21,357 nucleotides of DNA, from contig JANKJI020000001.1 in assembly GCA_024626585.2 (NCBI GenBank), positions 9,719,506 to 9,740,862 on the forward strand, in the 5' to 3' direction. Numbering within the stretch: position 1 is the first letter of the stretch; the number at the start of each line of letters is the position of its first letter. A model generated the notes under the pieces. That model did not search any database and was not told the DNA's origin. It was given only the letters and a program-made list of their open reading frames with translations. The position numbers and the translations under genes are program-made. Below, piece by piece: positions 10,077 to 21,357 of this stretch. The stretch comes from Ginkgo biloba. Its lineage: Eukaryota > Plantae > Ginkgophyta.

Positions 10077-10910
10077 CAATAAAGGGAGTATCGATCCCTT
10101 AGAATTCCTATGTTATTGGCTTGGTCAAGGTGCCCCAATAGACAAAAGTAACAACTTTTGTGGGATTGTTAAGTGATAGAAGGCATTAATAGTTTAACCA
10201 AGTTAATCTTAATGATATGCCTCGCATGAGGACCTTACGAGACTGAAAATTTTATGTCATTTACGATGCTAGAAATGAGAGGGAAACTAAGGAAATAATA
10301 AAAGAGAACTGTACGGTCATGAATCAAAACTTTTCCATTGGCTAGAATTAAATCATTTATTCAAAGTAGTTACTAATATCTCTATACATGCTTGAAAGAT
10401 TTGGGATTTTTTGTAATTAATATCTCTCCATTATTTTTTATAAATCCCCTAGTAGTGCATTTAGAAAGTCATAAAAAATTGCCTGGCTAAGCCATTTCCT
10501 CAATAGACAAAAGTATACATCCCTTGAAAGTCTTGCATTATTGGATTGTTCAGGGATCCCCAATAGAAAAAAGTAGTAGATTTTAAGGGACAATTAAGTG
10601 ACAATGAGCATTAATGATATGCCTTTCCTGAGGACATTACAAGTCTAATGAATCTATGCCATTTGTGGTACCAATGATGAGAGGGAAACCAAGGAAATAA
10701 TTAGAGATAACCTTGTGGTCATGACTCATCACTTTGCCATTAGCCAGAATAAAATCATTTTTAAACAATAGTTACTGATGACCTCACACAGGCGTAAAAG
10801 ATTCGAGCATTTTCTTAATGAAGATCCCGCAATTATTTTTTATAAATATTGTAGCAGTGCATTTAGTATGTCACAAAAAAATTTCCTAGTCAAACCGATT
10901 CCTTAATACA
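10077..10910 (-). repeat. Diverged tandem duplication (~10077-10500, ~10501-10910) with a 402-nt core period; probably a decayed coding repeat on the minus strand
   Basis: Anchors gggaaac (10281/10683) and gtgcatttag (10455/10857) are 402 nt apart. ccccaatag (10133/10558) is 425 apart because copy 1 has a 23-nt insertion. Confidence 0.85.
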
Positions 10911-15159: not shown

Positions 15160-16287
15160 GGCATTGTTACGTAGCTCATGCACATTGGTCAGTTGCCCCT
15201 AATCTCTTAAGACCTCAATTTTAGAGGGATTAACTCTAAATTCATACCAATCAATAATAAAGTTAAGGTAAGCGAAGTTATGTATGGCAAAGTTGCACTT
15301 CTCCATGTTAGCATATAACTAATGGACCCCAAGTGCTTCTCCCAAGTGCAACTGAATATAAGAATGTCATCAAGGCATACTATGATGAAGGAGTCTAGGA
15401 AGGGTCAAGGCACATCATTCATCAACCTCATGAATGTTGCAAGGGAATTGGTTAACCCAAAAGGCATCACCAACCACTCTAAAGAGACTCGATGTGTCTT
15501 GAATGTTATCTTCCATGTATCCCCCTCTCAAATCTACACTTAATGGTATCCCAACTTCAAATAAAACTTCATAAAGTACCTAGCACCATGTAGTTGATCT
15601 AATGAGTCATCTATGCATGGAAGTGAATACTTGTTATTCATCATAATCTTATTGATTGCCTTATAGTCGATACACATGTACCAGGAACCATCCTTCTTGA
15701 GCACTAACAAGAGCATTGAACCAAAAGGATAAGCATTGGGCCTAATTTGTCCCTTCTCCAATAACTATGAAATATTCATCTTAATCTCCTCACTCACCAT
15801 GATTAACCTATGATAGATACATGCATTAGAAAATGAAGCCCCTGGTTCTAGACCTATCCCATGTGATATGTGTCTCTCTAGGGATAAGCCATCATAAGAT
15901 GTGAATATATCCTCAAACTTAGAAAGCATTTTCTCCACCTACAATTCATATTTTCCATCATTGATCACTGACTCTAACTTGTCTCGATTCTCCAAACTCG
16001 ACTTGTGATGGCCTTTGACCATAATATAAATAAATTTCTAGGAAGATTATACCAACCTCTTAGCTTGTGCCCTATTCACCATAATGGAAGATCTAGGATT
16101 ACGAATAGAACAAATGACAAAATGGTTATTTCCTTTCATCACAATACACTTCCCTTGATAGAAAACTATCTTCGCCTTCTCATCATTCAAGAATAGAATT
16201 TTAATCAATATATTGGTGCAATCCATAGGCACCACATCATAAGTAATCTCATCAACATAGTCCTTAGTGATCAAAAACTTGAAATTG
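15160..16287 (-). mobile_element. Decayed Ty3/gypsy pol: end of the protease region and a near-complete RT
   Basis: FKFLITKDYVDEITYDVVPMDCTNIL; EKGQIRPNAYPFGSMLLLVLKKDGSWYMCIDYKAINKIMMNNKYSLPCIDDSLDQLHGARYF..LGYH; [42 protein letters not shown] (~15366-15377); EKCNFA..VNPSKIEVLRD. Confidence 0.95.
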
Positions 16288-19200
16288 NNNNNNNNNNNNN
16301 NNNNNNNNNNNNNNNNNNNNNNNNNNNNNNNNNNNNNNNNNNNNNNNNNNNNNNNNNNNNNNNNNNNNNNNNNNNNNNNNNNNNNNNACACACAAAAAAA
16401 AAAAAAACTACTAAGTTCTCTCTAAGATCACTTCGGTAACATGCACATTTCCTAACTTTGGATTCCAAAGCATCCACATATCCTCGCACATTTTAATGTT
16501 TGAAAATAAGAGTGATTTTCTCTTAGTGGAAGAAGTATTTAGAAGTAATGATGTTGGTAACAATGAAGTTTACCAGTAATAATGATATTTATCCAATTAG
16601 CAATGGTGCATGACTCTCCTAGTTGCNNNNNNNNNNNNNNAATGATAGGTTAATCTATCTTCTTATAATTATGGTATTTAGGAATAATAGCAATATCATT
16701 TTAAGTTAAAGATGGTATTTAGAAAGTAGCGTTGTCAAAAACCTATCGACTTATTTGCCATCTAATTGTATACACACTTATTTTGAAGGTAAGTTATTTA
16801 ACATGTGGGTTAGCCTTTCAGCTTTCAAATTATAAGCATTTTACCTTATTTTATGTTTTTTCATTTTTGTTGTCTTTATAGAGAATGATTTTATTATGTA
16901 GAAAATTTATATTAGTGTCACAATAAAGAGTTAGGTAGAAATGAACACATCCATAACACCAACCCTAGGGGTGTAACTAAGAACACTATTGGATTTAGTG
17001 CTTATGTGTGGAAATTACCAACCAATGGTCATGCGTCATGTGGAGTTGTGCCACTTCTATATGCAACACTAATACCCCCTAATGTGTGGGTGGTAGGTGC
17101 ATCTATAGCTTAGAAGATTGGATTTTTCATACTTGATTAAGTTGGGATATGTTGCTTCATTTAACGTAGAAGAAATGATGTTTTATTGAACTCCTCCTCC
17201 GCCACATCACTATTATTGTGATAGGAAATCAATATGGAGATATAGTGTATTATACCAAAGTTAATTTGACTTTCCTCTTGCATATGCCCCTTGGGAGCAA
17301 TAAAATATAAATTTTCTTTTTATTATTTACTACCTCTATTACTACAATTAATTTGTATTACAATGTGACAATCACATAAGGCATCGATCATTAAATACAT
17401 GCACTAGACAATCCAAAATGGTTGCTCTCAAGATCCTTGAAGAAAAGATTTATAAAATCCCAGATGAGGGAAAGTCTTAAGTATGATTAATTAGCATATA
17501 TTTTTAATATATATAATAAGTAATATATACATTATAGGCAAATGTTAGTAATTTGTACTAAATCTAGTAAATACAATAAGATTTTTCAATGAAATTAAAA
17601 AATCTTGGCAAATGTTTTAAAGCAATTTTGCCCATTGACGAATCTTATTTTTGGAAAATTTGTAAAAGAATAGCTAATTGGCTGTATAGAGCCCATAACA
17701 GTTTCTCTGAAAGGCTCCAAATGTCTTTGTAGACAATTAGAGATGATTTGGGAAAAACAGTCATGTTTTGCATCATATCTGTGATGGAACATAGGATCCA
17801 AAGAGTTGTCACAATCCAAGGCAGATGAAGAATTGTAAGTAATTCCAGTGTGAGTGCAAGCACTACTTTCACAGCAAGTGAACCATCTAGATTTTGATCT
17901 GTTTGGCAATGCCCTCCAACTATAGTGCCAGGAATGCAACTTTTCGACTGGTCCAAGCCTTGATAACTGACTCGTTCCAACATCCAATGCTTAATGGGCA
18001 GAAGGTTCTAAGGCTTGGTCGTAATTAACAGAAGAGCATGAACTCATTTTTTGGTTCAAAACGTGCATAATCTGATAGGCAAGGAATGTTGTGCACAAAC
18101 CCATCTTTCCACTGTAACTGCCATAACACTTGATTAACTACAGCTATAGCTCTACTTAGAGCTCTTGTTAGGATTATAAAATTGGCCAACAAGTAAGAAG
18201 CATCCCAGAGACCCAAAGCTTTTTTTCAATAATATCCCATCTTTGATCAGCCTGTGCGTTGAGGGCAAAGCATTTTTACAGCATATGATTTAAAGTTATT
18301 CCTGTGTGAGCTTAGCATCAATGCCAGTCAAACGAATAATTTCTTAGGGTTGTCATGAGGCAGAAAGCTAAATTCGATCTACAAAAGCCTCTTCCTATCC
18401 TATTTGTACACCACCTTGGGAATTGTATCAATTGAAGTCCGCAGATTCATTCCAAACTTTGATACTACTGTTTGTTCACTTATGATTTGCATTATCTGTA
18501 GATATTACAAAAGCAAATCCTTCCAGTTCAGAATATCGCAGTTAGATCATGTGTGTTCAAACAGAACATCTTTCAGGTGTCTAGCGGTGGGCAAGCAAAA
18601 CTTAACCACTTCAGCCATGAAATTCTTTGAATATATTGCAATCAACATGGAACAGAAGAATGTCCTTTGCACAGCAGTCTGATAACAACTGATTGAATTG
18701 TGGAGAACATTGATAGAAGATACAGCAATTGAATAGTGTGAACAAATTAAACATAGGTAAGTGAAGGTGAGAGGTAATGAGGATTGTAGACAGTAAAGAG
18801 GGTTTCTGAGCCGGAACAACAATGCATGAGAGATATAGGGAACTCAAGAGTAAGAAAAGGCCTGTACAAGGAGAATGCAATGAGAGAAATAAAACACAGA
18901 GAGACCATCCTTGAAAAGAATGAGAGCTGCCATGGCTCACAAAAGCACAAAAGGAAAATGACGGCATGACTAGGAAGAATGGGGATCACCCTTCAAAACC
19001 AGAAGTATCTTCAAGTTTTGGCAGTTAGGAAAACAAATGTGTCATCATATTTTCAGAGCTAAAATAGATTACAGTTTAATGGAAGTTGATCTCTTGATGC
19101 TCCACACTCATGCCCCTANNNNNNNNNNNNNNNNNAAAGATTGATCATTATAGAAATCACTAGAAAAATATTTGGTTGACGAACTTTATGACAAGTGTGA

Positions 19201-19345
19201 TGATGATTGATAATTGCAGAATTCATTGGCAAAATATTTGACAAATTTAGGACACTTTGATGAAAGTTCCTCTCATGAAGAAGCTCCATACATACCATTG
19301 CACTGAGAAAAGTGTGTAACAAGCATTTTTCCATTCACAACTAGT

Positions 19346-19539
19346 ACAGAATCCAGATGAGTTCACGTTTAACAGGTCTGAAATTAAGGTTTCAATATAT
19401 TGCACTTGTTCTCATGAAGCTTTATATGTATCACTTATCTAAGAAATGCATCACAAACAACTTTCCCTCAACAATCCGAACAGAATCCAGATGAGTTCAA
19501 GTTCAACAGATCAGGAAATGAAGGTTTCAATAAATTGCA
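19346..19539. repeat. ~59-bp direct repeat (19346-19404 and 19480-19539)
   Basis: acagaatccagatgagttcacgtttaacaggtctgaaattaaggtttcaatatattgca versus acagaatccagatgagttcaagttcaacagatcaggaaatgaaggtttcaataaattgca. Confidence 0.9.
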
Positions 19540-19578
19540 TAGCAGTCGCTCCCTTCCTAAGGTTTCCACATATTGCAA

Positions 19579-19596
19579 TCTCTCTCTCTCTCTCTC
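19579..19596. repeat. (TC)9 microsatellite
   Basis: Read directly from the sequence. Confidence 0.95.
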
Positions 19597-20580
19597 CAAG
19601 CTTGATCTTGCCACATATTCTTAAGGTTGATAAATCCCTCAAGCAATTAAAAGAAATGAGGCCTGCCTAAGCTAATATTCAAACACACAAATATATATTA
19701 TTGCCACACAAAACAGGATCATGATATTTTACAAGATGTTCACCTTAATATACGGTGGACAACGAGCACAGGTTTCCTCAAAAATTCATTTTAAAGCAGA
19801 GGACTTGTTCAGCATATGAAAATTTACAAGATATTGTCACATCAGTAGATGAGATAGAAAAAAGGCTATCCACTGCATTGGTTTTAACCTCAGGTTCATA
19901 AAAACGGCCGTTGTTACCCCTTGCTATCAAATTCACACTGACTGGCTGGAAGTTTTTTCTGGCTTTCCTTTTTCTTTTTCAAAAACTACATTAACAGAGA
20001 CTCCATTCAGAAAAAAGTTACCTCTGGATGTCCTATAACCAAGCAGTCCATATCAGGAAGAACATAACTAGGGAGATCCAAAACATGGGATGCTTACCAA
20101 CTCATGAAGATTATTAAAGACAATGAAAACTCGACATCAATTGTAACAGGTATAATAAGTTAAAATGCATGCATATCCAGCCCTATTGGGCACCCTGGAG
20201 GAAGCACTGAAAAGTAGAAAGAATAAAAGGCCTGAGTGCATCCAAAGTCGTCTCAAGCCCCAAATAAATTAATTTTAGAACATTGTTAGCATACTTTTCT
20301 TTCTATATAGTGGAACATAAGCACAAATTCTCATAAGGAAACTCCAAGAAAAGAAGTTTTCATGCATTTCTGCTATTGGATCAAACAAATTCTCCACAAG
20401 ATTATCACAAGTTCTCCATATTTATCTGCATAAATACCAAAGTAATGCACAGCATCTGTGCAATCTTGAAGCTCACTGCTTCTTTAAATTGCATTTTTGT
20501 GGAAAATAATGCTTTCAAACAAAAGAAGATTGTTTTGGAAACAGTAATGCTGAGAGCACAGAAAAATCAAAGATACTCAC

Positions 20581-20649
20581 GACATTTCCAAAGTGGCGAT
20601 CCATTGTCTCCACCACCAGATGGATGAATTCCAAAATCGCTAGTTCATT
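20581..20649 (-). CDS. AP4S: Isolated internal exon (69 nt, phase 0/0) of AP-4 adaptor complex sigma subunit
   Basis: Translates to NELAILEFIHLVVETMDRHFGNV, matching plant AP-4 sigma ...ENELAILEFIHLLVETMD(K/R)HFGNVCELD... It has a U-rich acceptor (ttttttttgtttggcag|) and a |gtgagt donor. Flanking AP4S exons were not found in the window. Confidence 0.9.
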
Positions 20650-20741
20650 CTGCCAAACAAAAAAAAACAATTAACAAATATTTAGTAGTCTCCTTTCCCA
20701 TTTCTAAAATGATATTATGAAATGAAAAATTCATTTTATAC

Positions 20742-20864
20742 CTTTTGTGTAAAACGTTCACAATTCTGCAATAGTTGTCCACTTCAAAGGCAGATTGAGA
20801 AATCATAGACATTGCACGGGTCTCCGGTCCCCATGGATCACTGTTGGTTGCTTCCTCTGTCATT
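20742..20864 (-). CDS. ENTH-domain (epsin-like) protein, coding exon 2 (123 nt, phase 2/2)
   Basis: (L)MTEEATNSDPWGPETRAMSMISQSAFEVDNYCRIVNVLHK(R) carries the ENTH signature EATxxDPWGP. Acceptor ttttcctgtatacag|, donor AG|gtataa. Confidence 0.93.
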
Positions 20865-21013
20865 CTGTATACAGGAAAACAATTGGCTCTAAACAGCAAC
20901 AGACATATTCAACTTCTCATTCTATTGAAAAACCCCAATACACAGAAACAATCAAACCCATTGCAAATAGAATACCAAATGCACAATTGAATTAACTAAG
21001 CAAAAAACCTTAC

Positions 21014-21123
21014 AATTCAGCTTCAGTGACATCAGTGAGTGCAAGCCTAGCTGTTCTGAGCTTTTCCCTTAGAAAAGATGAAGTTTGCTTCTTGACTTGG
21101 CCAAGATTTAGACTGCCCATCAT
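21014..21123 (-). CDS. ENTH-domain (epsin-like) protein, coding exon 1 (110 nt)
   Basis: MMGSLNLGQVKKQTSSFLREKLRTARLALTDVTEAE(L) matches the plant small-ENTH N-terminus KKQASFFxKEKxKTARLALTDVT. An in-frame TAG lies 18 nt upstream of the ATG. Donor TT|gtaagg; a 149-nt intron joins it in frame to exon 2. Confidence 0.93.
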
Positions 21124-21223
21124 TGATTTGATGGTCAACTAATCCTTGCCCTTGCTCTTGAATATAATAAGCTGAATATTTTCTCCTCGGCAATTCCTTT
21201 AGAAATAGCTGTAGTTTCAGCCT
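21124..21223 (-). other. Probable 5' UTR of the ENTH gene, with an upstream intron acceptor at 21223-21222
   Basis: Minus strand reads gattttatcag|G, 98 nt upstream of the ATG. Confidence 0.45.
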
Positions 21224-21270
21224 GATAAAATCAGTGCTAATCCTTGTATTCTCTAGAGGGAAATGTTACG

Positions 21271-21342
21271 GAAAACATAAGACTACTTCCTTCGTATTTA
21301 AAGGTATCTACGGCTTCAGATCTCCAGAAAACATAAGACTAC
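21271..21342. repeat. Exact 16-bp direct repeat gaaaacataagactac (21271-21286, 21327-21342)
   Basis: Read directly from the sequence. Confidence 0.9.
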
Positions 21343-21357
21343 ACAAACAGGCAAACC

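Follow-up and report, generated by a model that had tools for sequence, protein, structure and literature searches.

The gene for the sigma subunit of AP-4 (AP4S) spans 3.1 kb in grape, whereas the fern AP4S (Ceratopteris, P0052 locus), which encodes 143 amino acids, spans 66.9 kb. Introns longer than 20 kb make up 12.45% of those in ginkgo (PMC5118899). Among ENTH proteins, MTV1 has been described as an accessory of plant AP-4 (PMC9402974).

Here, we analysed a stretch of 21,357 nucleotides of Ginkgo biloba DNA (contig JANKJI020000001.1), below referred to as the window. On its minus strand, two coding exons of an ENTH gene are followed by a 92-nt gap with GT..AG ends (20741-20650) and by a 69-nt exon of AP4S. 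This arrangement had been described in an earlier note on the same DNA, and our analysis confirms its coordinates and splice sites. The locus resembles two known systems. Same-strand fragments of unrelated genes, with their introns kept, are found in Helitron and Pack-MULE captures, and gap-free joins of two single-copy genes are found in chimeric contigs of low-coverage short-read plant assemblies. Our results argue for the latter: the contig is most likely a chimera in a fragmented short-read assembly, in which two ordinary genes were wrongly joined.

Exons of ENTH and AP4S in the window

The 69-nt exon (20649-20581, minus strand, phase 0/0, adjoined by a GT) belongs to the AP-4 sigma subunit gene. 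Its translation, NELAILEFIHLVVETMDRHFGNV, matches the Pfam domain Clat_adaptor_s (PF01217) with an E value of 2e-4 and 21.8 bits over 23 amino acids, where the cut-off for a whole protein is 22.5. Of these residues, 22 are identical to the corresponding ones among residues 77-99 of AP4S from olive, grape and spinach. Grape AP4S has a matching 69-nt exon with the same phases, the third of four, and 11 of the 13 base differences between the two fall at third codon positions. Hence, the identity proposed in the earlier note is upheld by the domain match, the orthologues, the exon borders and the splicing described below.

The exon shares its borders, nearly all of its residues and its splicing to the expected neighbours with plant AP4S. 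It differs in that the window holds this exon only, while the remaining gene lies elsewhere or is missing from the assembly. A tblastn search with eight full-length AP4S proteins recovered this one exon only in the window, whose sequenced parts do not include the next AP4S exon. Its absence from the 4.2 kb downstream can be explained by the long introns that are usual in such genomes. The interval after the exon (16388..20580, minus strand) is probably a long AP4S intron of at least 4.2 kb, as its GT donor at 20580 is used by 25 RNA reads. Low-depth contigs of run X15 lie along this interval, and the depth of run X4 is 13-26. Ten long reading frames in 16916-20624 gave no Pfam match, so that no further captured gene pieces were found there.

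The probable AP4S intron also contains an AT-rich, very high-copy repeat at 17480-17690, with a summed X4 depth of up to ~1e5, and a diverged tandem duplication at 19310-19539, with a spacing of ~134 nt and copies that are 72-92% alike. Elsewhere in the window, two 270-nt copies lie 402 nt apart at 10209-10880 (74% alike), and decayed gypsy-like pol frames were recognised by eye from translations at 15210-16421 on the minus strand.

The ENTH gene begins with a 5' UTR (21124..21357, minus strand), which runs ~149 nt past the window edge; record 15 of X15, an RNA-type contig, covers 21014-21357 from record letter 150 onwards with one difference. Coding exon 1 (21123-21014, minus strand) starts with ATG, is 110 nt long, ends in phase 2 and is adjoined by a GT. 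By itself, it has no Pfam or NCBIfam match and no usable match in the ESM Atlas. Intron 1 (21013-20865, minus strand) is a GT-AG intron of 149 nt, confirmed by an X15 RNA joint at 20864/21014 that skips 149 letters with CT..AC ends. Coding exon 2 (20864-20742, minus strand) is 123 nt long, ends in phase 2 and shows no differences from the X15 mRNA contig. It matches the Pfam ENTH domain (PF01417) above the curated cut-off, with an E value of 7e-8, and its best PDB match is CLINT1/epsin-4 (E 2e-4), with epsins also among the best PDB matches.

The gene is an ENTH-domain gene, since exon 2 exceeds the profile cut-off and its mRNA continues into the remaining domain through the normal ENTH exon 3, as in plant ENTH proteins. 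In contrast to these, the window carries exons 1 and 2 only. The gene is probably related to epsin/CLINT and of the short plant ENTH class; the mRNA contig, if complete, leaves room for at most ~370 amino acids. Our searches likewise agree with the earlier note that both ENTH exon 3 and the neighbouring AP4S exons are absent: the sequenced part of the window contains no further exon of either gene.

Transcripts and reading frame

Four runs from four studies were aligned to positions 17400-21357. The RNA, of which a small part was sampled (6% of X24), came from individuals other than the assembled plant. In X24, which consists of polyA RNA, 34 of the 38 aligned reads were 99% or more alike, with most of the depth on the sigma exon. 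Here, 25 reads extend past 20581 into CELDIMFHL and 13 reads extend beyond 20651 into FFLVGVDGD, in both cases with an agreement of 1.0. CELDIMFHL and FFLVGVDGD are the neighbouring AP4S exons. Both of these AP4S loose ends are also present in X15, which we take to be RNA. Furthermore, an X15 contig of 1488 nt starts in the ENTH 5' UTR, joins exon 1 directly to exon 2 with the 149-nt intron left out, and proceeds to AAFDTKRWR, the normal ENTH exon 3.

The earlier note had suggested looking for an RNA joint at 20742/20649 and for reads continuing from 20581. No run lists such a joint, X24 and X15 included, at this shallow sampling of other individuals, while the splices of both parental genes were seen; the reads from 20581 lead to the next AP4S exon instead. 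These splicing patterns indicate that the two parts stem from separate genes, each of them normal and expressed. The exons in the window are identical to the expressed mRNAs. The intactness of the exons had been attributed to youth or selection. Selection accords with our finding that they are exons of two expressed genes, whereas youth, in the sense of recently captured copies, does not.

The two genes also fail to form a continuous reading frame. For this comparison, the exons were joined only to read the frame and the length of the open reading frame, and were otherwise searched separately. ENTH exon 2 ends in phase 2, whereas the AP4S exon has phase 0, a mismatch that the earlier note had overlooked. 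The joined exons read R-M-N-stop, so that splicing would lose the frame and run into a stop two codons later. The open reading frame comprises 80 amino acids after removal of the 92 nt and 109 if they are retained, and in either case contains no sigma residues in frame. The other AG acceptors downstream of 20741 offer no in-frame ENTH-like or AP4S-like continuation.

Hence, barring an unseen in-frame splice variant in RNA, a functional fusion is excluded on sequence alone. The canonical splice sites, the intact exons and the related cell biology of the two genes might have pointed to an ENTH-AP4 sigma fusion gene that links two coat-associated modules. Yet, such a gene would be out of frame and would contain less than half an ENTH domain (profile positions 8-46 of 124) and only 23 of 143 sigma residues, chimeric RNA was not seen, and the word search found no protein of matching length. 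That search, whose query was the stop-free frame surrounding ENTH exon 2, yielded no candidate under a length limit that excludes full-length ENTH proteins, and so has no bearing on relatives. A junction pattern had no match in metagenome contigs, a result that carries no information. Taken over all evidence, we consider a functional fusion gene extremely unlikely, and the shared vesicle-sorting role of ENTH and AP4S is most likely a coincidence.

Independent DNA and the origin of the join

Run X4, a sample from 2019, stems from a different study and a different individual; ~37% of it was read, and its contigs lose rare variants. Its contig 23 (421 nt, depth 19.2) matches 20389-20720 without a single difference, while its final 89 nt are not on the window. 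This departure places a probable false join at 20720/20721. The support for this breakpoint consists of one contig from one sample. Accordingly, the apparent 92-nt intron would fall into two parts. The 71 nt at 20650..20720 (minus strand), which are contiguous with the 69-nt exon in the independent DNA contig, represent the 3' end of the AP4S intron that precedes this exon. The 21 nt at 20721..20741 (minus strand), which follow the GT donor of exon 2 and lie outside the contig 23 match, are probably the first letters of the true ENTH intron 2.

The depth of contig 23 is similar to that of its neighbours (13-26). Moreover, the contig crosses 20720 unstopped, which suggests that the graph of this sample had no branch towards the ENTH sequence. 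The X4 depth in the bin 20568-20699 equals the depth of contig 23 exactly (19.2), leaving no room, among the contigs read, for a junction-spanning contig at k=31, which would have added depth. On the ENTH side, at 20832-21357, no X4 contigs were seen in the ~37% of X4 that was read. Additional X4 and X1 depth at 20700-20831 comes from unlisted pieces, which could be a true ENTH-side contig, a paralog or a chance repeat.

X1 is the only run that contains the whole stretch (share 1.00, against at most 0.91 of the sampled words in all others). However, X1 is not independent, but is the assembly itself with the N letters removed. It omits exactly the 17 N at 19119-19135, a gap that the independent runs X4 and X15 fill with 8 real letters. 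Once all N are taken out, the start of one of its contigs lies exactly 30 letters (k-1) on the other side of the 100-N gap at 16288-16387. All of its listed contigs have depths of 76-84. Being derived from the assembly, X1 lends no independent support to findings in this genome and should not be cited for them. The window itself consists of 0.2-2.5 kb pieces separated by runs of N. It is much more fragmented than the 2016 ginkgo draft with its contig N50 of 48-kb (PMC5118899), which points to a low-coverage short-read assembly.

Besides a functional fusion, we compared three explanations for the join. Misassembly, listed third in the earlier note, is the best-supported reading, given the X4 break at 20720 and the separate, normal mRNAs. 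As in known chimeric contigs, each gene is identical to its expressed mRNA and independent DNA departs from the assembly at a single point. In this chimeric contig, the ENTH gene would break off after exons 1-2 and ~21 nt of intron 2, and the sequence would pass directly into the AP4S intron, entering it 71 nt ahead of the 69-nt exon. The ENTH GT donor and the AP4S AG acceptor would have been paired by chance, producing an imitation of a 92-nt intron. In the plant, ENTH and AP4S would be separate and each spliced normally, and the join would presumably be absent from the sequenced individual as well. Technically, a chimeric fragment in the library or a short shared k-mer may have caused the join in a short-read assembly of low coverage.

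Alternatively, the join might be real: a non-coding rearrangement or a chimeric duplicate of very recent date, confined to the sequenced plant or at least uncommon in its species. It could have arisen by deletion, by translocation or by Helitron/Pack-type capture of pieces from both genes, and its product would be a truncated ENTH frame of 80 amino acids with an early stop, which would probably be degraded. The join at 20720/20721 contains no N gap, and a private allele is compatible with the fact that X4 and the RNA runs represent other individuals. On the other hand, neither the exons nor 332 nt of flanking DNA differ from the working genes, and nothing in X4 hints at a second copy of AP4S or at a branch in its graph. 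The locus also includes more than 4 kb of apparent AP4S intron, which is long for a captured fragment. A search of the gene strand over 16388-21357 gave no hairpin-CTRR of the kind that marks a Helitron 3' end, and the block is not flanked by terminal inverted repeats. Compared with known Helitron and Pack-MULE captures, the locus differs in that no element ends were found in the part searched, the upstream side lying beyond the window, and in that it shows no divergence from the expressed genes. The single-copy-like, unbranched depth of X4, in this one sample, gives no indication of an extra copy. We regard a private rearrangement as unlikely. Of the fusion or transposon-captured fragments that the earlier note had envisaged, the working chimera is contradicted by the frame, by the lack of chimeric RNA and by the mRNAs of both parents, whereas the captured-copy form is retained at lower weight.

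The same note had also considered two interleaved same-strand genes. In that case, the ENTH gene would start within an AP4S intron, its intron 2 would contain the AP4S exon, and the X4 sequence would be an insertion allele at 20720. This lineage often has long introns, as illustrated by ginkgo (PMC5118899) and by the fern AP4S of 66.9 kb, and both mRNAs exist. Yet, the independent genomic contig departs from the window at 20720, which this explanation can only accommodate by assuming, ad hoc, that X4 carries an insertion of at least 89 nt at exactly that position. Furthermore, a strong donor only 92 nt from a strong acceptor should cross-splice, whereas no such splicing was seen and all 13 of the 13 reads that enter the AP4S exon come from the upstream AP4S exon. 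Neither gene has a further exon in the 21 kb window. Interleaving is therefore poorly supported and quite improbable; if true, it would imply an unusual means of keeping two overlapping pre-mRNAs apart.

Implications for this assembly

A chimeric contig, as favoured here, would probably carry no biological weight, because it would consist of two ordinary genes that were seemingly joined falsely. Our results do bear on how this assembly is used. It can hold gap-free joins of single-copy genes, and findings of 'chimeric genes' in it need support from reads.
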